Shown: piece by piece, positions 2,623-37,044 of the stretch
How the letters are laid out: every line of letters starts with the position of its first letter
Numbering within the stretch: the first letter of the stretch is position 1
Assembly: GCF_001194135.2 (NCBI RefSeq)
Contig: NC_068981.1
Span: forward strand, 155,254,367 to 155,299,592
Length of the DNA: 45,226 nt
Source of the DNA: Octopus bimaculoides
Lineage: Eukaryota
Direction of reading: 5' to 3'
Notes under the pieces: generated by a model
Told to the model about the DNA's origin: nothing
The model's database searches: none
The model's input: only the letters and a program-made list of their open reading frames with translations
Made by a program: the position numbers and the translations under genes

Positions 2623-4883
2623 CATCATTATCATTATTGTTTTTACATACACTTTTCTAGGTTGGCATGAAACCTTCTGGAGCAGTATTTCATAGCCAGA
2701 TATTCTTTCTAGTGCCAAGCCTTTTAATCACTACTTATAAAATGCATGGATAAGGTGTACCTATTTTAAGTATTAGGATATGCATTACCTATTTCTATGT
2801 GTATGTGTGTGTGTGTGTGTGTGTACACACCAAAATTATTTATTTTCAACAATACTAACTTAATGCATTAACTATATGGTCTTAATGATTGAGTTGAGAA
2901 AGATGAACTCATTATGGAGCAATGTTCTTTATCACTCAACTATGACTGCATCTATTATTTTGATGCTGGCCATGTCAAATGTCTTCTAACAATAATACTC
3001 AAACTTGACAACTTGCACAAGAGATGGTTTTATCTTAGAAGCATGTGTTTTTAAAGACAGTTTCTTTTGACTCTATTGTTAAACCTTCATAAGTGTCAAT
3101 CTAACTAATGCAGGTCTTCACTGAGTTTTTACCCTCACCACAACCAGAAAAAAGTGAAACGTAATGAATACCATTTGTGCCTCATATGTTTGCTATTAAT
3201 TGTTCTGTCTTCTGTTTACATTCAATAAACGTGAGTAGTTAGTAGCCATGCTTTGCTCATGTAATTGAAAATTTAATCAAAATATTTTATGGATCCGACT
3301 TGAGAATTGGAAAAAATGATACTATTGTAAATATTTTTTTAAATACAGGTTTTGCTTAAAAAAAACCAAAAAATCTGTAGAAGTGTGAGCCCTTTGTAGG
3401 ACTGGTTTCACTCTCTGAATGCCCTGCTACTGACACTGATGGCAATCGACCAGAAAAATTCAACCTAAATACAATCTGCATTGAACCTACAAGACTGAGG
3501 CTAACTTCAAAGCAATGGACACCATCCCTTCACACTATGGCAATGCCATGTTGGGTGCTTCATAGTATTTAGCTGGTACTCTATGATCATTGTTTTCTTT
3601 GATAGTCTAATTTTGTTGGAAAAGACTACCTCCTTGGCTTGGAAACCATCTATTTTAGAGACTTTCACTTTCATGGGGACCAGGAAACAAAGTATTGGTG
3701 AAATGAGCCTGAAACTAAGTAGCTATGAAACAATGTCCTTCACCATATCAAGCTATATATATATATTTTATGTGAATTATGTATGTAGAGAGAGTCCAGG
3801 GCTATACTACATTATATGAGTGAGAACAGGTAGGTGTGAGGAAGGGAACATGAAAGAGAGAAAATAGTTGAGAGTGATGAAGAACCAGAGAAAGTCATTG
3901 AAAGAGAGGTGTGGGTGTCATGAGAAGGGGTAGGTCAGTGAGAGAGATGAAGAGATATATGTAGCCTATGTAGAAGATATTTAAGCAGGGTAAATTTAAC
4001 TATTTCTCCAAAAACTGAAAAAAAATGAACATCCTTAATCGATTTTCAAACCTTATTGGGGTCACATCAAAGATGTCTACATCACTTTGACCAATCCCAC
4101 AGAAACAAGCAGTCCATCTGTTTATATACTCCACAAATCCAGTAGTTATAGAAACCTGGAGCTATTACTGAATACTGACATACATTTTATACACATTGTA
4201 TATAATACATATTGAATGGATTGTCACAGCTGGAATGGTATCGTGTTCTTTACTTTTACTGTAGATTATTGAAGCATAAGTAATATTTGCATTGTGTTCA
4301 AAATTATAAATTTATATAGAATTACGATGACTTTTATTCAACAAATAGGTCACCAATTGCATGCTTTTTATTTCCAAGGTATTTGACTAATATGTCCATG
4401 TGTGTATGCATGTGTGTACATTCCAGTTACTGTCCATAAAGTGTTGGTACATCAACTCCATTATTTATATCTTTGCTACCCAACAAGCTCCTCAATATTT
4501 TGTAACTCTTAAATGAAGACTGTATAAAGACCATTTCAATTTTAATTTTTAATTATCATTTACAAGTTTCCATCTCTAAAATTTTCAACAATTCTAATTT
4601 TACTGGAGTATATCTGTATATTAATGTTAGAAATATATGAAAAGTAAAATGGTTAAGATTTTGATTATTAATCAAATTAAATTGAACTCTTTGTGTGTGC
4701 TTATATTCATAAACACACTCACACATATATGTAGTACATGCAACTGAGGTAGTATTTAATAAAAATAGCTGTCTATGTATTATACCTAATGTATATACAC
4801 TGTTGTTAGGCCAGTTATTGTGGTATTTGTTCCAAGCTAACATCTCTTATGGATGTGTGTGTGCATGTGTGTGTATATATATA

Positions 4884-5280
4884 TCATCATCGTTTAACGT
4901 CCGCTTTCCATGCTAGCATGGGTTGGACGATTTGACTGAGGACTGGTGAAACCAGATGGCAACACCAGGCCCCAATCTAATTTGGCAGAGTTTCTACAGC
5001 TGGATGCCCTTCCTAACGCCAACCACTCAGAGAGTGTAGTGGGTGCTTTTACGTGTCACCTGCACGAAGGCCAGTCAGGCGGTACTGGCAACGGCCATGC
5101 TCGAAATGGTGTCTTTTATGTGCCACCCGCACAAGAGCCAGTCCAGGGGCACTGGCAACGATCTCCCTCGAAAACCCTACGAAGGCCAGTCAGGCGGTAC
5201 TGGCAACGGTCACGCTCAAAATGGTGCATCTTATGTGCCACCTGCACAAGAGCCAGTCCAGGGGCACTGGCAACGATCTC
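4884..5280 (-). mobile_element. SINE family C with internal 115-bp-period tandem duplication
   Basis: Matches 1-330 and 16302-16570; repeat units start at 5064 and 5179. Confidence 0.85.
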
Positions 5281-6273: not shown

Positions 6274-7221
6274 TGGGGTCATCCCATAAATAACGTGGGT
6301 TTTTTTATACTTCTTTGCTTTTTCAAAATTAAGATAAAATTCTTTTCTAATCTAAAATATGCCTTCCTCCATTTTCTAAAATGCTCTTCAATCTATCTGG
6401 AACTCCTCCAGTACTGTTCTGACTTTGTCTACAGAATTCATATTTTTTCAGTCCAAATGATTTTGAAGACTGCAGACTAAATGATAATCACAAGGGGCAA
6501 TGCCCGGCGAATATGGTGGGTGGGGCATTGTTTTCCATTCAAACTACTCCAGCCTTTTGAATGTCATCCTCACTGTATGTGCCCGAGCATTATCCTGATG
6601 GAAGAACACCTTTTGTCTTGAAAGCAAAGATGATTGTTTTCCTTCTGGTACTGATTTAAGCCACTCAAGCTGCTTGCAGTAGATCTCCTTTGTTATCGTT
6701 TGGTTTGGGTTTAAAAGTTCAAAGTTCACTAAAGCTTTCATATCCCACCAAATAGATAACAACACCTTACGTAGGTGAAGACCTTCTTTAGCCTTGGGTG
6801 CCAGTGTTTCTCCTTTCCCTAGCCAATGTCTTCAGTGATTGACATTTTTATAGAGAACCCATTTCTTGTTACCAGTCACTAACCAATCATAAAAAAGGTT
6901 CATTCGTGAGACATGACTGCAAAGAAGAGCACACATTCACTCTCTGCACACGATTAAACTCAAAAAGTTTGTGAGGAACCCATTGATCCAATTTGCTGAC
7001 TTTTCCGATGGCATGCAGGTGTCGATGAATAGTTGATGACCAAATCCAAGCTTCTCTGCTAATTCTTCAACAGTTATGATATTTTGCTCCACCAGGGTTT
7101 GCATGATGTTGTGGTTGAGCTCTAGATCTTTCAGGATGAGGCTCATCTTCTAGGCTGTAGTTTCCGACTTGGAATTTCTGGAACCACTGTTGACACTGGC
7201 TTACGCTTATTGTCTGACCCC
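6274..7221 (-). mobile_element. Decayed mariner (DD34D) transposon; transposase pseudogene, 5' end lost in the gap
   Basis: Motifs WVPHKL, VTGNKKW (first catalytic Asp changed to Asn), LSIWWD, HQDNARAH and PPYSPGIAPCDYHL; TA followed by TIR-like TGGGGTCATCCCATAAAT at about 6272-6291; frameshifts. Confidence 0.92.
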
Positions 7222-7696
7222 NNNNNNNNNNNNNNNNNNNNNNNNNNNNNNNNNNNNNNNNNNNNNNNNNNNNNNNNNNNNNNNNNNNNNNNNNNNNNNN
7301 NNNNNNNNNNNNNNNNNNNNNNNNNNNNNNNNNNNNNNNNNNNNNNNNNNNNNNNNNNNNNNNNNNNNNNNNNNNNNNNNNNNNNNNNNNNNNNNNNNNN
7401 NNNNNNNNNNNNNNNNNNNNNNNNNNNNNNNNNNNNNNNNNNNNNNNNNNNNNNNNNNNNNNNNNNNNNNNNNNNNNNNNNNNNNNNNNNNNNNNNNNNN
7501 NNNNNNNNNNNNNNNNNNNNNNNNNNNNNNNNNNNNNNNNNNNNNNNNNNNNNNNNNNNNNNNNNNNNNNNNNNNNNNNNNNNNNNNNNNNNNNNNNNNN
7601 NNNNNNNNNNNNNNNNNNNNNNNNNNNNNNNNNNNNNNNNNNNNNNNNNNNNNNNNNNNNNNNNNNNNNNNNNNNNNNNNNNNNNNNTATATATAT

Positions 7697-13300: not shown

Positions 13301-13611
13301 CACAGGATAAGACTCCTCAACTGAATGGAGTACTGAATGGCGGAATAAGAAACTATGTTAGAAGAAGAGGAACAGGTGTCTTACTGAAGAGGTAAATACA
13401 TAGCTCACCCACCTGGAAAGTGAGAGAGAAAGAGAGACAGAAAGAGATGGGATCCATCTGGATATCATTTGCTGACTCTTTTGATAGATCTGTCTAGGTT
13501 AAGTGTCTCTGCACTTGTATACTATCAATGGTATTGATGTTCCCTCTGTCTCATGCATGGTTGAATGCACCAGTACATATCTAAGAATATATATAAATGT
13601 ATGTATATATG

Positions 13612-14346
13612 TCTTTTATCTTTTACTTGTTTCAGTCATTATACTGTGGCCATACTGGAGCATTGCCTTAAAGAATTTTAGTTGACCTTGTTGACTTCAG
13701 TACTTATTATATTTTTGTAAAGCCTAGTACTGATTCCATCAATCTCTTTTCCTGAACAGCTAAGTTACAGGTACATAAACACACCAACACCTGTTGTCAA
13801 GCAGTGATGGAGGAGAAACACATACACAAACACACACACACACATTTATATCTCTTTTACTTGTTTCAGTCATTTGATTGTAGCCATGCTGGAGCACCGC
13901 CTTTAGTCGAGCAAATCGACCCTAGGACTTATTCTTTGTAAGCCTAGTACTTATTCTATCGGTCTCTTTTGCCGAACCGCTAAGTTACAGGGACCTAAAC
14001 ACACCAGCATCAGTTGTCAAGCGATGTTGGTGGGGACAAACACAGACACAAAAACATATACACACACATACATACATATATATATNNNNNNNNNNNNNNN
14101 NNNNNNNNNNNNNNNNNNNNNNNNNNNNNNNNNNNNNNNNNNNNNNNNNNNNNNNNNNNNNNNNNNNNNNNTATACATATATACGACGGGCTTCTTATAG
14201 TTTCCATCTACCAAATCCACTCACAAGGCTTTGGTCGGCCCGAGGCTATAGTAGAAGACACTTGCCTAAGGTGCCACGCAGTGGGACTGAACCCAGAACC
14301 ATGTGGTTCGTAAGCAAGCTACTTACCACACAGCCACTCCTATGCC
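13612..14346 (-). mobile_element. Two tandem SINE family A copies (partial 13612-13845; full-length 13851-14346 with a gap in its microsatellite)
   Basis: 13851-14346 is nearly identical to 2215-2622. Confidence 0.9.
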
Positions 14347-16230: not shown

Positions 16231-16301
16231 ACCATTTTAGTTAATCCTTTCAAATCCAGCAGTTCTTTATTTCAATTTGGTATTTATTTTGTCATAATTT
16301 T

Positions 16302-16539
16302 GTGCAGGTGGCACATAAAATACACCATTTCGAGCATGGCCGTTGCCAGTACCTCCTGACTGGTCTTCGTGCTGGTGGCACGTAAAAGCACCCACTACAC
16401 TCTTGGAGTGGTTGGCGTTAGGAAGGGCATCCAGCTGTAGAAACTCTGCCAAATCAGATTGGAGCCTGGTGTAGCCATCTGGTTCACCAGTCCTCAGTCA
16501 AATCATCCAACCCATGCTAGCATGGAAAGCGGACGTTAA

Positions 16540-16570
<31 letters not shown>
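16302..16570 (+). mobile_element. SINE family C, young 3' portion
   Basis: Near-exact reverse complement of 4884-5120; (GAT)n tail. Confidence 0.85.
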
Positions 16571-17034: not shown

Positions 17035-17277
17035 CTTTTATTTTTACATTTTGTAGTCGCCATGCTGGAGCACCACCTTAAAGCGTTTTAGTTGAAGAAA
17101 CTGACCCCAGGACTTATTCTTTTAAAGCCTAGTACTTATTCTATCGGTTTCTTTTGCCACACTGCTAATTTATGGGAGCATAAACACCTTACCATTGGTT
17201 GTCAAGCAATGGTTGGAGGTGGCAAACACAGACACAAAGACACACACATAAATAAACACACACACACATATATATAC

Positions 17278-17308
<31 letters not shown>

Positions 17309-17468
17309 CATGCACAATGGGCTTCTTTCAGTTTCCTTCTACCTAATCCACTCAAAAAGCTTTGGTCGGCCCAAGCCTATAGTAGAAGGCACTTACTCAA
17401 GGTGCCACACAGTGAGACTGAACCTGGAACCATGTAGTTGGGAAGCAAGCTCCTTACCACACAGCCAC

Positions 17469-17470
<2 letters not shown>
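17035..17470 (-). mobile_element. SINE family A
   Basis: Colinear with 2215-2622. Confidence 0.85.
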
Positions 17471-17502
<32 letters not shown>

Positions 17503-18149
17503 CATCATAAATATACAGGGATTAGCAATTGAGTTGCTTCTCCAACATACTGAAAATTTAGAAATAGCAGTCAAGGAACTACTGATTCTAAACTACAAAT
17601 TTTTCTCTAAAACGGATGGCGATATTTATGGCACACATAGAACAAAAAACCGGAGGGAAAAGCGTAAACAAAACAAGTCTTTAGTTAATTGGATACAAAT
17701 CGTTTCATGGTTAAGTGAATGAAAATTTCACTATTCCAATCTTCAGCCCAAATATTCTGATAAATTTGAAAGTGCCGCTAAAAAAATTCACGGTAATCTT
17801 TGGCCATGCGACACCAAAAATCAACGATAAGAAAGGCACTTACGAATTCATCGGCTAGTGAGTGCAGGCATCTCACCTCAAAGAAATCTATTCCATGTGC
17901 GTCACAAATAGTCCCGTATGAAAAGAAGTCCCGTGTGGAGGGATTACGGTTTAACCATCTAACTTAGAGATATCAAATATAAAATATACAAGAATAATTC
18001 CTGCCCTTATTCTTGTATATTATATATATATATATATATATAATGGTCCTGAAAAGGAAGAAAATTGGAGTATTTCCAGTGAGACACTCAATCCAAGTGC
18101 TCGAGACTACACTTTTGAAAGAAATGGAGTCACAAAGAAGATCAAAATT

Positions 18150-20860
18150 CTGATGGTGTAGACAATCCACACTGGCAAATCCAGTGTGTGGATCTAGAGA
18201 AGTGTAAAATATATATATAATGAAGAAAATTGTTGTATACAGTTCTCAGGTGCACTACAACTAGAAAGAAAAAAAAAAGGCCATCAGGTGTAATGCTGGC
18301 GATTTCAAGAAGCATGGCAGTTTTGAAGGATGTAGTGTCTCGACAGCTAACAACTGATGCGGGTAGTTTATTCCATTCTTCAGCAATTCTGAGCGTGAAA
18401 AAATGCTTCCGAAAGTCATGGGTGCTGTGTTGCTTTTTAATTTTATTAGCATGTCTGCGAGTGTTTGTCATATGGAATTCAAAAAGGTGCCCAAGGTTGT
18501 TGTTGGAAAGATGGTGGATAATCTTGTGGGTGTCTACCAAATCAGTTGCCAGACATCTGAGCTTCAATGTACCCATGCCCAGGTAAGCAAGACGTTCAGG
18601 GTATGGTAGATGTCTGATGGCAGGTATTCGTTTTGTTGCACATTTCTGAACAGTTTCCAGGAGATTTATATGCTGAGCAAGATAGAGGTTCCAGACTGGT
18701 GAGGCAAATTCCAAGTATGGACGTACCATTGTCGTATACAATTTTAAATAGAAAACTGGAGAGCAGCTGACAAAGGTCTTACTGAGTGATGTTAGCACCC
18801 TTCAGCTTTCTTGACAATCTTAGAGATGTGGTTTGTCCAATGCAGATCGTTGTTTACAATGATACCCAGATCACATCCTCTAGGAGACTTCTTGAGATTG
18901 GTAGTATTGAGGAAGTATGTAAAGGCTGGATTTTTCCTCCCAAAATGCATGTTGATGTACTTATCCACAGCTAGCTTGAGTTGCCAGTCAGAGATCCATT
19001 GCTACATTGTATCCAGATCTGATTGCAGGAAAGATCTATAGCACATTGGATCTGTTCTTTTTATTTCGAGGTACAACTTGATGTCATCTGCATATTTCAG
19101 CACTGTACCATTCCTCAAGTTGGCACCTATATCATTAATGTATGCAACAAACAGTAGGGGTCCAAGAATGGATCCCTGTGGTACACCTGAAGTCATCTCG
19201 TAGGGTGAAGAATGATGTCCTAGAACTGTAACTACTTCTTTCTGACCAAGAATGAAGGACTTCAGCCAGTTATAGAGATCATCCTTCACACCCATTGCAG
19301 AGAGTTTTACCATGAGTCGTTTGTGTGGTACAGAGTTGAAGGCTTTAGCAAAATCACGATAGACAGCATCTCCCCATGAGCCGCCATCAAGAAACTTGAT
19401 GAATTGACTACAGCAGTTGGAGTTAGAGATAAAACCAAATTGTAAGGGTCGAATAAAGCTGTGAGAGCTCCAAAAGTTCCAGTGTGTTTCTTTGACACAG
19501 AACTCCATCAGTTTATCAATGTAGCTATTAAGGCTGACTGGATGGTAGTTGACAGGTGATGTACGATCACCTCTTTTGAACAGGGGAACAACACTGGTAA
19601 TTTTCCAGTGCTTTGGAGTGACACAGTTGTTAAAGCAGAATTGAAAAAAGAAGAAAGCTGGTGCAACAGAAAGAACCCACCACATTTGAGAAGCAAATAA
19701 GTAACACCATCAAGACCAGGAGAGGCATAGTTGCACTTATTTTTGAGGTGGCATTGCAGCATTGAGGGTGTGAATTTCACAGATGTTACAGCATTTGATG
19801 TCAAAGTTCATGAAGAAGGTACATTGGGATTTTCAGCTGTAAAAATGCCAGCATAGCATTCAGCAATAAGCTCAACACATCTTTGGGGTCATCAGTGATC
19901 TGACCTGTGTGGGAATTGCGAAGAGAGCCAACTGGGGAGTGAGGTCTCTGTTTTGAATGCATATATTTCCAGAACACTTTGCTGTCGGGGCTAGTTGCTA
20001 TATGTCATTCAAACTTAAGCACTGCCTTTTTTGTCACTTGCTTGAGATGGTTGGATGATCTGTTGTGTCTTCTGTTTTCATCTGTCCCAAACTGTCTGTA
20101 TTTCTGTTCAGCATCACAACAATCTTTCCTGGCAAGTCGAACTGCTGCAGTTTCCCAAATTGCACTGCTCTTATTTCTAGAGCATTTGCGCAGTACTGAT
20201 GCTTCATATGTAGCCCAGATTGACTGAGGATATTTTGAAAAACAGTATTGACATCCCCAGAATAGTAAAATTCAAACCAGTTTTGGTGTTGTAACTCCTT
20301 ATGGTAACAGTTCCACTCTGCTTTGTTCCAGTCAAGGCGAGTGGTTTGAAGGTGGTGGTGCTTCTTGTTTCTGCCTATAAGAGACAGATTAGCAATGATC
20401 ATAGCATGATTGGTGTCACCTAGAGGTTCCTTCGTCGTAACACTGATAACAGTTTCAAGAGTGGTGGTAAAGAGCAGGTCCAAAGTGTTATTACCTTATG
20501 TGGGAGAGGTAACTACTTGGGACCAGTTTGCATCCAGCACACTACATCAAGGAAGTTGCCTGTGCTTTGTGGCCAATGAAAAGTTTCCCATTCAATTTCC
20601 GGGTAGTTGAAGTCACCAGCAATGAAAAAATAAGTGGCTGTTTTCTTAGATGCAGCCCTGGGGATTTCAAAAAGTTGTGTGTCTTGATAGTAATTTGGTA
20701 GGCGATAGACGACTCCAAGTATTAGTGTTGACATGTTTATGCGTAATTTGCAAAAGAGTGCCCCATGTTGTGATTTGTCCAGATCATCACAAGGAATAGC
20801 TGGAAAGTTTGACCGATATCATCAATTTATCATGTATCCAAAAAAGAAGCACACTCTAAA
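18150..20860 (-). mobile_element. 5'-truncated CR1-clade LINE (endonuclease + reverse transcriptase ORF2 pseudogene)
   Basis: EN motifs LILGVVYR and AGDFNYPEI; RT motifs DFAKAF, SGVPQGSILGPLLF and YADD; C-terminus VRPYLEFASPVW..ERL..RKHFFTLRIAEEWNKLP; several frameshifts. The 3' boundary is approximate. Confidence 0.95.
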
Positions 20861-24124: not shown

Positions 24125-24500
24125 CATGTGGGCGTGGCTGTGTGGGAAGAAGTTTGTTTCCTAACTATATGGTTCTGGGTTCAGTCCCACTATATGACAC
24201 CTTAGGTGAATGTCTTCTAGTCAGGTTGATCAAAGCTTTGTGAGTGGATTTGGTAGATGGAAACTAAAAGAAGCTTGTCATGTGTGTATGTATGTATGTG
24301 TCTGTCCCCACCACTGCTTGACAACTGGTGTTGGTGTGTTTACAGCCCTGTACCTTGATGGTTTCATTAAAAGAGACTGATGATATAAGTACCAGGCTTA
24401 AAAAAACAAGTACTGGGGTTGATTTGTTCAACTAAAATTCTTCGAGGTAGTGCCCCAGCATGGCCACAGTCTAAACACTGAAGCAAAAGATAAAAGAAAG
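24125..24500 (+). mobile_element. SINE family A
   Basis: ggcgtggctgtgtgg head through cagcatggccacagtc..gaagcaaaagataaaaga tail. Confidence 0.85.
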
Positions 24501-25475
24501 ATATGTATGTATATACATACATACATGGACACATACATATATAGGTATGACTGTGTGGTTATTAATATACATCTCCACACACATATATCTATACAGTTTC
24601 CTGTATATACACACACACATGCATGTAGAGATGTACACAAAAAAGATAATATATCCATCCTCCTGTCTGATGAACATTCTATCTTTCTAATATTTTATTT
24701 CAAATTTACAATCCTTTCAAGTAAAAATATACAGAAACATAAGTTCCTTTATGTCTATAAATATTCTAATATGAGTAAGTGTTCTTTCAAGTATGTATGA
24801 GGATGTTTACAAACAGAAAGGAAATACAATTGAAAAATTAAAAAAAGACAAAATAAGATAAAAACAAAATAAAAAAAATTAGACAAAGCAGATGTAGAAA
24901 ATGAATATAATGTAATTGTGAGCATGCACAGTAATGATACTACACTGCAACATGCAAGCACATGCATACTCTCCAACTGCTAGAGATTGAAATGTGAGTA
25001 TACCATCAACATTATCAGCATTTTACATCTACTGTCTATGCAGGTACGTGTTGAATGGTTTGAAAGGGTCTGGTGCCTTGCACCAGCATCTCAGTTTTAG
25101 CTTAGTTTCTATGGCTGGATGCTGTTCCAAACCCCAACCACTTCATAGTGTACATGCAGCATTTTTGTCTGCAGCACCAACACTAATAGAAGTTGTCTTG
25201 CCCTCAACAAGGCTAGAGTCTGTGTGTGTGTGTGTGTGTGTGTGTATCATCATCATCATCATTTTTACAGCTGCTTTTTCCATACTGGCATGGGTTAGAT
25301 GAAACTCATTCAGGAAGTGTTTTATGGCTGGATATCCTTACTATTGCCAACTCTTAGTTATTTTTCAAGTATTTATTGTTATTCTATTGATCCTTACACT
25401 TTAAAACCATGGAAACTGTCTAGCTACTGGATGTATACTTTACAGGAGACACAAACAAACCAAAAATTAGGTTAA

Positions 25476-25693: not shown

Positions 25694-26843
25694 TTAAAGA
25701 GAAGCAATAGTTGTCACTGTGTGATCTCAGAACAAGTAAATCTCTGGCACACAGTCCAGTAAAGGATTAGATGTTATCTCTAGATCCAGTACTCAGATAT
25801 ACCACATATTCACCAAGAAGAGTTCACGCAATTTTTTAATGCCACATTCAACAGAAAACACAACATCAAGCGATGATAAGAAGAAATAACTGAGAAAATG
25901 CACAAAAAATAAGCAGGAAACTAGTAAACTAACATGAGTCACAAAACTAACATGTTGTGACTAACATGAGTCACAAAACAAACCATAAAAACACTGTACA
26001 AAATAATCAGTAAAATAAAGATAACTTCCATAAAAACAGTTAAGAGCTTTTTATTTTAATAGTCAAATATTAAACTGGTTCTACCCTAATTCCTTTCATG
26101 CGTAGCTTCTGTTTCCTTGGCTGTGTAGCATTTCTAATGCTTGTTTTTTGAAAAGAAAGGTTGAGCACAACTGAGGTGAGAAAGTCACACAGAACCAACG
26201 ACAGTGAATGCAGATAACATAACTATGTTTCATGGCTTGATTGTAAGGTGTTATTTATGGCAGAGCTAGATGAAGGAAAATTTAGACTGATCTCTATTTA
26301 TTTATTTATTTTGTATTTTTATATGTCAATTTGCAAAAGTAGTATCTTCAGTTAAAGCTTTTCAGTGGGGACATTGCTTTACCACATTTCTGTTGGCAAG
26401 AATGACTAAGTAGTGCCATCATTTCTTTAGGTTTCTCACTAATATATAAGTCCTTCATTGATATAGGTTGGTAAAAGATGCGCACGCTCGCGCACACACA
26501 ATTTACATCCACATGATAATTATTTTGTTTCACTTCTATACATATTATGTTTTCTAATACAGCACATCTATAAGAGATTTTATCTCAGACAAAAAGCAAT
26601 GTACCTTGCCTGTCAGTAGTTTATGTATGTTCTGTAGGCTACATTGATAGCTAGTTTAATTTAATACTACCTCAATTGTATACACCTGATATATATATAT
26701 ATATATATATATGTACATACACACACATACACAAACATATACATATATATATATATACATATACATATACAGGGTGCGGTGAATAAACTTGTCTAAATTA
26801 TGCAAAAATGAAAATAACACTGACATCTCATTTTAACAGACGT

Positions 26844-27057
26844 TCTTTTGTTCTTTTACTTGTTTCGGTCATTTGACTGTAGCCATTCTGGAGCGTGGCA
26901 TTTAGTTGGGCAAATCGATCCCAGGACTTATTCTTTGTAAGCCTAGTACTTATTCTATCGGTCTCTTTTTGCCAAACTGCTATGTTACGGGGACGTAAAC
27001 ACACCAGCATCGGTTGTCAAGTGATGGTGGGGAGACAAATACATACACACATACATA

Positions 27058-27115
<58 letters not shown>

Positions 27116-27116
27116 N
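26844..27116 (-). mobile_element. SINE family A, 3' half running into a gap
   Basis: Near-identical to 13851-14085. Confidence 0.85.
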
Positions 27117-27570
27117 NNNNNNNNNNNNNNNNNNNNNNNNNNNNNNNNNNNNNNNNNNNNNNNNNNNNNNNNNNNNNNNNNNNNNNNNNNNNNNNNNNNN
27201 NNNNNNNNNNNNNNNNNNNNNNNNNNNNNNNNNNNNNNNNNNNNNNNNNNNNNNNNNNNNNNNNNNNNNNNNNNNNNNNNNNNNNNNNNNNNNNNNNNNN
27301 NNNNNNNNNNNNNNNNNNNNNNNNNNNNNNNNNNNNNNNNNNNNNNNNNNNNNNNNNNNNNNNNNNNNNNNNNNNNNNNNNNNNNNNNNNNNNNNNNNNN
27401 NNNNNNNNNNNNNNNNNNNNNNNNNNNNNNNNNNNNNNNNNNNNNNNNNNNNNNNNNNNNNNNNNNNNNNNNNNNNNNNNNNNNNNNNNNNNNNNNNNNN
27501 NNNNNNNNNNNNNNNNNNNNNNNNNNNNNNNNNNNNNNNNNNNNNNNNNNNNNNNNNNNNNNNNNNNNNT

Positions 27571-28031
27571 CAAATGCTCTAATTGCTGACAGTAGACTTG
27601 AGCATTGATTGTTGCATTAGGTGGTAACAATTCAAAGTGAATTACTCCTTTGCAATCCCACCAGATAGAGAGAAAAACCTTTTTCCCATGAAGTTCCCTT
27701 CTTGGTTGTGGTTGAGCTTTTTCCCTTTTACCAAGCCACTGTTTACGACATTTAACATTTCAATAGAAGATCCATTTTTCGTCACCAGTCACAAGTCTAT
27801 CCAAAAAGGGTGAAATGAGTTCGCGAGAATGGAGAGAAGAGCAGATACCAATTCGAGATTTGCGGTTGCTTTCGGACAATTCATGAGGCACCCATTAGGA
27901 ACCTTTCCAAGTTGTTAAAGACGACGATGAACAGTTGTATGGTCTTAAACTAAGTTTTATTGCCAATTCTTCAACTGATAATGCAGAATTTTCTTCAAGT
28001 AATGCCTCAAGGAGCTTATCATCAAACTCAG
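27571..28031 (-). mobile_element. Decayed mariner transposase fragment (second family)
   Basis: Motifs WVPHEL, VTGDEKW and LSIWWDCKGVIHFELLPPNATINAQVYCQQL; clearly diverged from the 6274-7221 copy. Confidence 0.9.
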
Positions 28032-28642
28032 CTGGATGTTAAGAAGGTGCATCCCTCCCGGCTTGCCAGCTCTGGTCACAGTGTCCAACCCATGGCAGCA
28101 TAGACAATGGACGTTAAATGATGATGATATTAGTACGATCACACTATCTTTAAGATGACAATGATTTGATATCATTGTGTCATATTTTCCTATAGTTTAT
28201 ATGAATAAGTATACATATGGCATGCATGAAGAAGAACACTGGCACGAAGGAAGCTTGAATGTCATTAGTATTCCTTACTAAACACAGTATCATTGTAAAT
28301 ACTGTTATACCATTATATCCTATCTATATTTATGTGTAGTGAAAATCTGAGCTCACCTCATTCATATTATTGGCATCCTTTTGATGCAAACTGAATGAAA
28401 GAAGTGTATTGTTTTTTTATATATAACATGCAGTTGTTATATAATTAAATATTGTTACATATAAAATGAAAGTGAAGTGAAGCAAACCAATGTGTTGATA
28501 TTTAATAACAATATAATCTTAATATCACTCACGTTGAAAAGGAAAATAATTAGAAACAATATAATTGTATATACGAATAATATATTTACTGTTAAAGCAA
28601 TAAGCACACCTATACTATTGTGCCACCTGACTTTTTCTCATA

Positions 28643-32842: not shown

Positions 32843-33204
32843 TCTACTTACAGCTATAAAGATAGTAAAAAGAATTACTTTGAATATTATTTGTTAGTGT
32901 TACGTAACCTTCTTCAGTTCTAGTGGAAATAGTTATCAAAGTACTTTGGAGCTATCCATATATCAAACATGCAAGGAAAGAAGAGGTCCCCATTATTACC
33001 TAGAGAACCAACAAAGAAGCTTCTTTGTGGTTGATCAATTCTCTAGAAATAGTTATCATATCTCCTTCAAAGCACTGTCTGCTGCCTGAGAAGTAAGGGA
33101 AAAGACACATTAGATAATGTAGTCTGGGGTAAACTATACTAGAAAAATAAAATTACAGAAAGGCTAAGACGGAATGCTTTTAGTCACAGGTTTGCTGAGA
33201 TGGT

Positions 33205-33260
33205 GGTGAAGAAGAAGAAGAAGAAGAAGAAGAAGAAGAAGAAGATGAAGATGAAGAAGA
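33205..33260. repeat. (GAA)n microsatellite
   Basis: Seen directly. Confidence 0.95.
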
Positions 33261-33837
33261 CAATAACATCCACAACAGAGCTATTCCCTCTATTTCTCTT
33301 TATATATTGATTATTTTTGTCTTGTCAATCAAGTAGAATAACTTTGCTGAAGAGGTCTAACAAGACAGAAATCTGCCTATTACTTTTTAATAGTTAGCTT
33401 TGGAGTTAATCCCCTTTCTTGTTGCTTTTAGATTCTAAAATCTGTGAAGGAGTGTTTGGTCCTAATTGCTCAGATGATCGAAATTTTTTAACTCATTATG
33501 TTACATATGTGTGACCTTTTCATAATCAACAATTTATTAATCTTTAAGACAAAAAAGAAAACAATAAATGATATGTAGTATATTAACTGGAATTTCTATT
33601 TCTATTTCGAGTTGTTTAAATAATAGAAGGAAATGGAAAATAGTAAGAAATTCAACTAAATAATGACATAATGAACATGAGATTCCAGATATAAATTTAG
33701 AGGCTTCTTTCCCAAGAAAATGTCAAATATGTCGAGGAGGAATAAATGTTAAACAATTGCTAATACAGTAAATAATTAACAAATTAGATACATTCATATA
33801 ACAGCAGATAAGAAATAGAATGATATGTTTTGCGAAC

Positions 33838-33920
33838 ACTTACAAAGATCTTCAAATCATTTGTATGAAATTGTCTAGTTTCTTACCTGGAAAATAATAA
33901 AAAAAGAAATTACTCATAAA
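33838..33920 (-). other. Candidate recursive splice site with a 43-nt cryptic RS-exon
   Basis: Minus strand: gagtaat-ttctttttttattattttcCAG|GTAAGA..(43 nt)..ttt|GTAAGT. Confidence 0.5.
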
Positions 33921-36444
33921 AATCAAGATTTATATATATATATATATATATACATATATAAAGAATTGTTTAATATTTGTTTAAAGTAAACATTTTTGTA
34001 TTTGGTTGTTAAATCTAAAAACCAATATTTGTTATTATAAAAGATATATATTATCGAAAAAAAAAATGAATATTTGTTTTGAAAAAATATTTATTACTGA
34101 AAAAAAAAACATACTAAAATTGTTGTAATCAGCTACTGCATCTGCCATCTTTTAACAAGAAATACTTCTCATCTTTTTTTGCATAGATTTTCTTTTTCTA
34201 GTAATATTTTTCTCTTTTTCAGAATTCAAAGAATTGTGAAAATAGAAAATACTACTGGATTTTCAGATTTTCCTTTTCTTACTTTACATTACTTACAAGA
34301 TAAAATGGTTGAAATTTTTAAATATAATTTCTTAGAGGGTAATTATGGAGATTCTAAACAAATCTGCAATTTTCTGAGTCATCAAAATGCCAGCTTGCCA
34401 GTAAAAAAGGTTAGCTGTTCATTTCAGATCACTGGCAATTTACTATGCATGAGGGAGTCTTTATGTGGTCGCTTGACTTGTGCTAGAAATAGCAGCCAAA
34501 TCTCTCCCAAAGCACACTCCATTGTCTTAAATACACACACACACACACACAAACACAAGATTACATTATCTAGTGTGTCTTTCTTTAGATATATGTGTGT
34601 GTAGTTTTTGGTTTTTGTTCTTTCATCATCTACATATAAAACTGACTTGGAGCTAACAACTTTGATTCTCAATGCTCTACTTTAATATGTTGGAAACAAG
34701 TACCAAGGAAGGGTGAAGCATAATGTTTAATTCAGTGCAAATAAATATGTATGAATTAGATAACGAGATCCTAAATACAATATATCTGGAAACCAAATGG
34801 AATGGTCATGAGTGGAATGCCTTTGATCATAGGTCTACTTGATCAGGAGTAGGTTGGAGGTTTGCAATAGCAACATGTCTAATCTATTTACTCTATGAAT
34901 AAACCTCTGACATTTTTCAAACACCTTATTTACTACTTGTGGAATGGATTAAGAAGAAATGCATGAATATATCTAGAAACAGTGATAAAGCATTTTATGC
35001 ATAGTTTTACAGCAGAAATTATGGGGATGACAGAGATGAGGTGAACTGGAAGTATAAGGTCAGTGACATCCTTAAATGGCTGAGGGGGCTTGCCAGAAGG
35101 AGAGGACTGAGGAATTTCATGTGCACAGAAACAAGACTAGAGTGGGTCCCTTTTCACCTTGGGGTTGTCATATGAGATGAATATGTGTGTAGCTGCATTG
35201 AGTATAGGGAGTTTGCTGCTAGGTTCTAACCAGAGGTTAGGCAGGTAGGGCACCTTTGGATATAACTTGGCTGGAAAAGATTGATGCTCTTTTCTTCCCC
35301 ATACAACAGAAAGGAAGACAGCAAATTGGACAGAATTATTAGAGTGTCTACTAGAACATCATGTATGACTTGTTCCTGGCTCTCTACAATCTGAGTATGA
35401 ATCCTGCCACAGTCAAACTTTATTGTTTGTCCTTTTGGGGGTTGGAATGAAACAGCTTGGGATAGCTAACTGGACATTCAACCTGTTTTGGTGACAGTAT
35501 ATTCTAGCACTGGAAGCAAACACACTCACACACACACACACACATGCAAAAATATACATGTCCAGATGGCAAGAAGGAGAGCAAGAAACATTAAAACAAG
35601 AGAAAGATATTAAAATATGTTGATGTCAAATAAGTCAGCATCAAATTAGTGACAACAAATAGGTGATGCCAAAATGGTTGTGGCAGAACATCTTATACTC
35701 TATTGGAGTTGATGAATAAAAGAGCAGTAGATTCATCTCTATTTTTTTCTTTTCCCCAACTTTTTCTTTATGGACTGTACCAGTAATTAAATCATCATTA
35801 TCTGGTTGTGCTGCTAGCATGGATTCCTGTGACTCTGTTACCATCCAATCCTGTTATTCACATGAATTTGAATTCAGAGCTTCAGTCTTTCATTACCTGA
35901 TTACACGACCATGGATGCCACTCCTATGGATGCACTGCAGTTACTCTCTTGATAGAGCTTGATCTTCTAGGATTCCTCTGCTCAGCATCAATGTAAGAAG
36001 CACTGTTGGCTCATCTGAGCTCTTCTGTTGCCTCTTCACAATCTGCTATGCTGCAGCCCCATGACTTTGCCGTAACCCTGGCAGAGTGGCCAAACAGGTG
36101 CTATGCTTTGCCAAAGGGCAACTCATAACAAAGCAGAACACAGTCATCAAACTGTGAGGTATTTTCAAAATACCTACATTCCCAATATTCAATATTCCAC
36201 AGACATATTATACCCTAAACACAATTCTCAGGTTGAATTGGTGTGATAAGGGTGCACATTTTAATTGCAACTCAGTATATAATGTCTGAGGAGCATTATA
36301 AGCTGCTTTCACAAACAAGAGTTCAGTCACTCAGACAACTGAATGCTTGTTTATTGTCAAGACTAATGGAGAATCCACTTCAGCAGAAGTAGATGTTTCA
36401 GTGTTTGAGCCATTACAGTTACAAGAAGTACTTTAATCCTTTCT

Positions 36445-36602: not shown

Positions 36603-37044
36603 TCTTTTATCTTTTGCTTGTTTTAGTCTTTGGAATGCGACCATGCTGAGGCACCACATCTTTTACTTGTTTTAGTCTTCATAAAGTGACCATGCTGGGG
36701 CACCACCCTGAAGGGTTTAGTCAAATAAATCAACCCCAAGACTTATTTTGAAGCCTGGTACTTATTCTATCTGTCTTATTTGTTGAACCACTAAGTTAAG
36801 GGAAGTAATCAAAGTAATACTGGTTGTCAGGCATTAGTGGGGGACAGACAGACAGACACATACACACATGCATGCACGCATACACACATGCATGCACGCA
36901 CACACACAATGGGCTTCTTCCAATTTCTGTTTATCAAATCTACTCACAAAGTTTTGGTTGCCCCAAGGTTAGAGTAGAAGACATTCGTCCAAGGTACAGT
37001 TACATGGGACTGAACTTAAGAGTACATAGTTGAGAAGCAACTTC
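36603..37044 (-). mobile_element. SINE family A with duplicated 3' end
   Basis: The tcttttRcttgttttagtc..gaccatgctg..gcaccac segment occurs twice (36603-36657 and 36659-36710). Confidence 0.8.

Follow-up and report, generated by a model that had tools for sequence, protein, structure and literature searches.

On the minus strand of a 45,226-nt stretch of Octopus bimaculoides DNA (hereafter, the window), we find a well-defined candidate for a recursive splice site, in which a pyrimidine tract ends in an acceptor that directly abuts a donor (33887/33886) and a second donor follows 43 nt downstream. The motif is present, is rare for a single window, and lies in unique non-coding sequence. It is put forward as a candidate and not as a discovery.

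Read along the minus strand, the site runs ...GAGTAATTTCTTTTTTTATTATTTTCCAG|GTAAGAAACTAGACAATTTCATACAAATGATTTGAAGATCTTT|GTAAGTGTTCG, and the whole segment from 33920 down to 33838 is TTTATGAGTAATTTCTTTTTTTATTATTTTCCAG|GTAAGAAACTAGACAATTTCATACAAATGATTTGAAGATCTTT|GTAAGT. A branch-point-like GTAAT occupies 33909 to 33913, with its branch A (33910) lying 23 nt before the AG, and the zone between this motif and the acceptor contains no AG at all. GTAAT is a low-information motif in AT-rich DNA, and TTGAT and TTTAT are available as alternatives further upstream. The polypyrimidine tract TTTCTTTTTTTATTATTTTCC (33889 to 33909) consists of 19/21 pyrimidines, has TT at −5/−6, and leads into the acceptor CAG (33887 to 33889), such that the last intron base would be 33887. 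The first donor, GTAAGA (33881 to 33886), abuts this acceptor directly and forms the putative ratchet point. From there, a putative cryptic recursive-splice exon extends across 33844 to 33886 (43 nt, not a multiple of 3), with zero internal GT dinucleotides and a stop codon in each frame (TAG in frame 1, TAA in frame 2, and TGA in frame 3). It is closed by the second donor, GTAAGT (33838 to 33843), whose exonic flank is weak (TTT|GTAAGT). A (TA)15 microsatellite (33931 to 33960) directly adjoins the branch and tract region on its upstream side, as read along the minus strand; it is a low-complexity context that is outside the signal itself. An earlier note on this DNA had described the CAG ending at 33887, the GTAAGA from 33886, the GTAAGT from 33843, and the interval of 43 nt between the donors, and all of these coordinates are correct. 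Its branch-like GTAAT, its T-rich tract of about 20 nt, and its stops in all three frames were likewise recovered, the first two at 33913 to 33909 and 33909 to 33889.

To place the motif among the other splice-like sequences of the window, we scored them with a simple and rough position matrix, which is valid only for ordering sites within the window. By this matrix, the acceptor ranked 3rd of 5,133 AGs, the first donor (CAG|GTAAGA) ranked 7th of 5,290 GTs, and the composite junction ranked 2nd among the 277 AG|GT sites in the window. The tract at 33889 to 33909 was also among the 11 best pyrimidine-tract-plus-YAG sites of the 5,133 AGs. Taken as a full 9-mer, the second donor was mid-ranking on account of the TTT on its exonic side, and 568 GTs reach its score. 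In genomic context, the matrix score was 11.1 for the first donor versus 3.9 for the second, although a donor rebuilt by splicing would owe its strength in part to the final bases of the upstream exon. The junction ranked first by the matrix is a second strong AG|GT on the minus strand at 13412, with its tract at 13414 to 13452 (TCTCTTTCTCTCTCACTTTCCAG|GTGGGTGAGC). Here the tract is made up of CT-rich tandem repeats and adjoins a SINE-like copy, and the donor, GTGGGT, departs from the consensus and overlaps a GTGAGC that lies 4 nt further along; despite its rank, we find this junction less convincing than the one at 33886/33887.

The frequency expected by chance was estimated in two ways. Simulation of 40 Mb of Markov sequence (orders 1, 3, and 5; both strands counted) predicted 0.004 to 0.035 equally strong AG|GT junctions per window and ∼0.002 per window when accompanied by GTRAGT 15 to 150 nt downstream. 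An empirical estimate, which draws on the real sequence's own low-complexity content, agreed with the simulation: the number of acceptor tracts as good as this one (11), multiplied by the rate at which GTRAG was seen to follow AG, gave 0.021 per window, and a second-donor factor of 0.07 lowered this to ∼0.0015 per window. GTAAGT occurs 25 to 100 nt downstream of 2.2% of random positions, and such a donor is found nearby by chance at 2 to 7% of positions. All-frame stops occur in 15 to 20% of random 43-mers and are therefore weak evidence. Neither the plus strand nor a further 70 kb of octopus DNA contained an AG|GT composite of equal strength. On these figures, the composite exceeds the chance expectation for one window, a result tempered by thresholds and features that were fixed after the site had been seen. 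For the core CAGGTAAG alone, the earlier note had reckoned about one occurrence per window at roughly 66% AT, which agrees with the single occurrence per strand counted here in a window of 64.5% AT. The O. bimaculoides genome is ∼2.7 Gb in size, and the measured rate scaled to this size predicts ∼100 fortuitous composites with the second donor and ∼1,000 without it. With ∼100 to 1,000 chance copies genome-wide, the motif alone therefore cannot carry the inference of recursive splicing.

The sequence around the site appears only once in the material searched. The site segment (33838 to 33927) had no other copy in the window (self-BLAST of 33000 to 35000 returned microsatellite matches only) and no BLAST match in 70 kb of O. 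bimaculoides DNA from three loci. Transposon domains were absent between 26 and 44.5 kb of the window. With neither a second copy nor a transposon domain in this region, the earlier statement that the site has no recognizable transposon nearby holds at the sensitivity used. Elsewhere, the window contains six N gaps, many TA, TG, and GA microsatellites, and several families of interspersed repeats. A degraded jockey-like non-LTR retrotransposon on the minus strand (∼18142 to 20495) retains RVT_1 and endonuclease domains with several frame breaks; its reverse transcriptase segment (19005 to 19709, minus strand) shares 82 to 89% identity along part of its length with O. bimaculoides "jockey-like" proteins, and the DNA of the element is 85% identical to a copy in O. 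bimaculoides locus L001. An exact look-up of the reverse transcriptase open reading frame gave no recorded entry. Two minus-strand mariner fragments were found, one at 6547 to 7149 (Transposase_1 match at 6547 to 6831, E = 4 × 10−16; interrupted by the N gap at 7222 to 7687) and the other at ∼27570 to 28040 (interrupted by the N gap at 27116 to 27569; 88% identical to a copy in locus L003). On the plus strand, open frames at 641 to 1146 resemble the C-terminal region of a LINE ORF2 (for example, ...GHLERLHDNGKIV...) by eye only and gave no Pfam match. Self-comparison revealed at least two SINE-like families that make up ∼19% of the window, with copies at 2 to 560, 2208 to 2622, 4725 to 5280, 13587 to 14085, 16300 to 16564, 17047 to 17502, 24131 to 24522, 26795 to 27115, and 36658 to 37040, among others. 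One of these families has a 67-nt internal tandem duplication (175 to 337 and 5042 to 5280). SINE-like families were present in all three O. bimaculoides loci, and the SINE-like, mariner, and reverse transcriptase repeats common to the window and these loci were 72 to 90% identical. The window is eukaryotic in character, and these shared repeats, together with the reverse transcriptase match, support its derivation from octopus.

A host gene was sought across the full 45 kb. Pfam scans of all 314 stop-free segments of at least 40 amino acids detected transposon domains only. A chimeric query of 2,265 amino acids, assembled from the 45 most protein-like non-repeat segments, had zero matches among 5.8 billion proteins, including the O. 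bimaculoides proteome, and when the whole window was scanned for open frames with a good acceptor on one side and a good donor on the other, each strand gave a single weak candidate and nothing convincing. Neither Rfam (at gathering thresholds) nor ARAGORN detected an RNA gene in the window, and a 24-mer spanning the junction was absent from metagenome contigs. Because no host exon was recognized anywhere in the window by Pfam, protein search, or the splice-flanked open-frame scan, the window is either intergenic or deep intronic. About 200 nt from the site, the plus strand contains a stop-free stretch of 167 codons (34101 to 34601) that is unusually long for DNA of 31% GC. It had no homologue among the 5.8 billion proteins and no Pfam match, it terminates in an HTHTHT run encoded by a CA repeat, and it is probably a product of chance.

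Pyrimidine tracts were unequally distributed between the two strands of the window. The minus strand held 10/11 of the best pyrimidine-tract-plus-YAG sites and 36 separate regions of pyrimidine-rich 20-mers, versus 12 regions on the plus strand, across the whole window (minus-strand examples run from 584 to 42575). Runs of at least six T showed a minus:plus ratio of 59:27 (P = 7 × 10−4), and the minus strand remained favored (44:16; P = 4 × 10−4) after masking of every recognized interspersed repeat with a 60-nt margin on each side. As an intron control, we used the opening 10 kb of a kinesin gene annotated on the plus strand (L001, 10661 to 20600; O. bimaculoides CM046601.1), which is essentially intron, since it contains no recognizable coding exon. 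The sense strand was favored in this control (T-runs, 19:7; pyrimidine regions, 12:0), and two O. bimaculoides loci without a spanning gene were symmetrical (T-runs, 25:23 and 14:14; pyrimidine regions, 17:15 and 7:7). The calibration thus comprises one genic and two intergenic loci, and microsatellite-driven counts in the control loci reveal over-dispersion in statistics of this kind. Single-base AT skew was +0.02 to +0.03 in the window versus −0.10 in the kinesin control (T over A on the sense strand). AT and GC skews in the window were small and partly contradictory, leaving the tract-level asymmetry alone as informative, and polyadenylation and 5′ splice site hexamers showed no strand bias in the window. 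In the introns of 222/222 vertebrates and 96/96 invertebrates, TT and poly-T have been reported to be more abundant on the sense (non-transcribed) strand, with a stronger bias for longer tracts (Heilbrun et al. 2021, PMC8002178). The asymmetry observed here suggests, as circumstantial and not strong support, that the window is transcribed from the minus strand, which we put at about even odds.

Well-documented recursive sites in flies and vertebrates allow a feature-by-feature comparison with the octopus motif. The intronic ratchet points of Drosophila (Hatton 1998; Burnette 2005; Duff 2015; Joseph, Kondo and Lai 2018; Joseph and Lai 2021) are juxtaposed acceptor|donor pairs with an exaggerated pyrimidine tract and highly conserved flanks, and 196/197 of them (99.5%) have TT at −5/−6. 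The associated cryptic exon is ∼50 nt long, out of frame, poorly conserved, and equipped with its own donor, which is usually beaten by the stronger regenerated donor. The octopus motif resembles these sites in its TTTCTTTTTTTATTATTTTCCAG|GTAAGA juxtaposition with a prominent pyrimidine tract and a GTAAG donor, in the TT at −5/−6 (TTCCAG), and, at the sequence level, in a short out-of-frame exon closed by its own donor (43 nt here versus ∼50 nt). The first donor also looks stronger than the second in genomic context and may, as in flies, prevail once rebuilt, depending on how the upstream exon ends. The motif differs in its donor, which is GTAAGA and not GTAAGT, and in its occurrence in a mollusc; moreover, the fly sites were defined by junction reads, lariats, saw-tooth coverage, and ultraconservation, whereas the octopus site is known from sequence.

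Vertebrate recursive sites and exons have been described in long neuronal genes (Sibley 2015; Blazquez 2018) and in a survey of mouse brain (PMC8797253). Sites in the mouse have an AGGT core enriched for AGGTAAGT / AGGTAAG and strong acceptors, and they lie in introns of >51 kb within genes of >294 kb, for the most part in intron 1 or 2 of genes expressed in the brain (PMC8797253). The octopus motif shares the AGGTAAG core, a strong 3′ splice site score, and pyrimidine richness in the upstream 20 nt. It also has a downstream 5′ splice site that could serve exon definition, and inclusion of the interval would bring a premature stop, which is weak evidence. The 45-kb exon-free window is compatible with the vertebrate host-intron features, taken as an intron of more than ∼50 kb in a gene of more than ∼150 to 300 kb, but not sufficient to establish them. 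Like pseudoexons and decoy sites, the motif is a good acceptor/donor pair in deep non-coding sequence without coding potential; unlike them, the pair is unusually strong (2nd/277 AG|GT) and forms a zero-length acceptor|donor junction. Judged by sequence, the octopus site shows each of the features by which a recursive site would be recognized at that level.

We weighed the readings of this motif from three inputs, namely the chance rate, uncertainty over whether recursive splicing in octopus is as frequent as in flies or as rare as in mammals, and the probability of about one half that the minus strand is transcribed. In combination, these inputs give a fortuitous site an even chance, make a true ratchet point a lesser and tentative possibility, and leave an ordinary exon unlikely. 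The most likely single reading is accordingly that of a fortuitous pseudo-splice site, neither selected nor appreciably used. On this account, a T-rich tract beside a TA microsatellite, in AT-rich and exon-free DNA, would end by chance in CAG|GTAAGA with a GTAAGT 43 nt on, and the site would be one of the ∼100 to 1,000 composites predicted by chance for a genome of this size. The richness of the minus strand in pyrimidine tracts would provide a larger local supply of acceptor-like sites, and strong pseudo-acceptors are indeed locally common, as the strand distribution of the best tracts indicates. Post hoc thresholds, an ordinary second donor, uninformative all-frame stops, and a tract that adjoins a microsatellite all point in the same direction, as does the failure to find a coding exon or host gene in 45 kb. 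In mouse, 4.77 million sense-strand AGGT sites yielded 84 with junction reads, of which 19 were recursive and 46 were unannotated exons (PMC8797253), a background against which a chance origin gains weight. Nevertheless, the expected frequency of the composite falls 50- to 500-fold short of one per window, and its equal was found neither on the plus strand nor in the 70 kb of other octopus DNA. Features on which the site was not obviously picked, namely the TT at −5/−6, the AG-free zone, the cryptic exon of ∼50 nt without an internal GT, and the seemingly stronger first donor, also match functional sites, and the tract asymmetry suggests that transcripts of the window carry the motif in the sense orientation. 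Should the minus strand be transcribed, as the tract asymmetry makes plausible, signals this strong would be expected to be recognized at least occasionally, and the site would then act as a ratchet.

On the second reading, which we hold only tentatively, a gene on the minus strand would have a very long intron here, and the motif would be a genuine ratchet point for its recursive removal. The strong acceptor (33887) would first pair with the GTAAGT (33843) to define the 43-nt cryptic exon. The upstream exon would then join at 33886, rebuilding a 5′ splice site (exon end|GTAAGA) that would compete with the weaker TTT|GTAAGT and usually win, such that the 43 nt would be removed with the remaining intron and the mRNA would bear no scar. 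Were the rebuilt donor to lose, the frameshifting, stop-rich 43 nt would be included and the transcript degraded. All four steps (exon definition, ligation, donor competition, and removal) are carried over by analogy from other animals. Consistent with this reading, every sequence-level feature of fly ratchet points and their cryptic exons appears to be present, the composite is rare by chance, and the window is exon-free over 45 kb, as expected in a giant intron. The poly-T and pyrimidine bias toward the minus strand also agrees with a ratchet point, since it matches that of the kinesin sense strand, is absent at two intergenic loci, and has a counterpart in the sense-strand poly-T bias in introns of 96 invertebrates (Heilbrun et al. 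2021, PMC8002178). However, the AT skew is weak, the polyadenylation and 5′ splice site hexamers are unbiased, and the strand calibration draws on a single gene and two intergenic loci. Among mammalian AGGT sites, in addition, constitutive recursive sites are very rare.

An ordinary expressed exon that happens to start with GT would use the same splice signals, and the 43-nt interval could then be an unannotated micro-exon (alternative, poison, or untranslated-region) or belong to a minus-strand non-coding RNA, and would be retained in some transcripts and not skipped by recursion. Experience in mammals gives this reading some weight: unannotated exons made up 46/84 of the AGGT sites with junction reads in mouse brain versus 19 recursive sites (PMC8797253), and expressed recursive-type exons far outnumber silent ratchet points in mammals. 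We nevertheless consider an ordinary exon unlikely. At 43 nt the interval is short, the exonic context of its donor is poor (TTT), and the first donor appears to be stronger than the second, which favors skipping. In addition, no nearby frame was matched among 5.8 billion proteins, and no RNA family matched in the window.

A further reading, for which we see little likelihood, attributes the motif to a degraded plus-strand retroposon, whose old 3′ tail would be represented by the A-rich GGAAAATAATAAAAAAAGAAAT and the TA microsatellite and would supply the pyrimidine tract in antisense. Antisense Alu elements supply pyrimidine tracts on becoming exons in primates, and an A-rich run followed by (TA)n is a common layout at retroposon 3′ ends. 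The plus strand shows this order at the site, and SINE-like, mariner, and jockey-like copies abound in the window. In contrast, comparison with the rest of the window and with 70 kb of O. bimaculoides DNA revealed no further copy of the 600 nt on the body side, no transposon protein domain lies nearby, and the plus-strand poly-A excess survives repeat masking with 60-nt margins. A retroposon tail would bear on the origin of the motif and not on its use, and it is compatible with either chance or function; we regard it as possible but unsupported. A U1 snRNA pseudogene was rejected by eye, as the similarity of the plus strand, which reads CTTACCTGG, ends after 9 nt.

The literature searched contained no report of recursive splicing in molluscs; co-mention with "cephalopod" was incidental only, and there was none with octopus, in agreement with the view that recursive splicing is undescribed in cephalopods. 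Octopus genes have very long introns, and the octopus is therefore a natural place to look for this mechanism. Given cephalopod intron sizes, confirmation would be useful but unsurprising, and specialists would expect such sites. A single motif cannot by itself extend the mechanism to a third major animal branch, and the present value of the site is that of a well-specified candidate. The strand bias of poly-T and pyrimidine tracts may, for its part, mark the direction of transcription in unannotated octopus sequence. If the candidate is a true recursive site, it would be the first in a cephalopod or in any lophotrochozoan. It would extend a known mechanism to a third major branch of animals and would date stepwise intron removal by exon definition to the bilaterian ancestor. 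Recursive splicing would then help cephalopods to process their very long neural genes, and the site described here would offer a concrete locus at which the splicing of giant introns in these animals may be tested.
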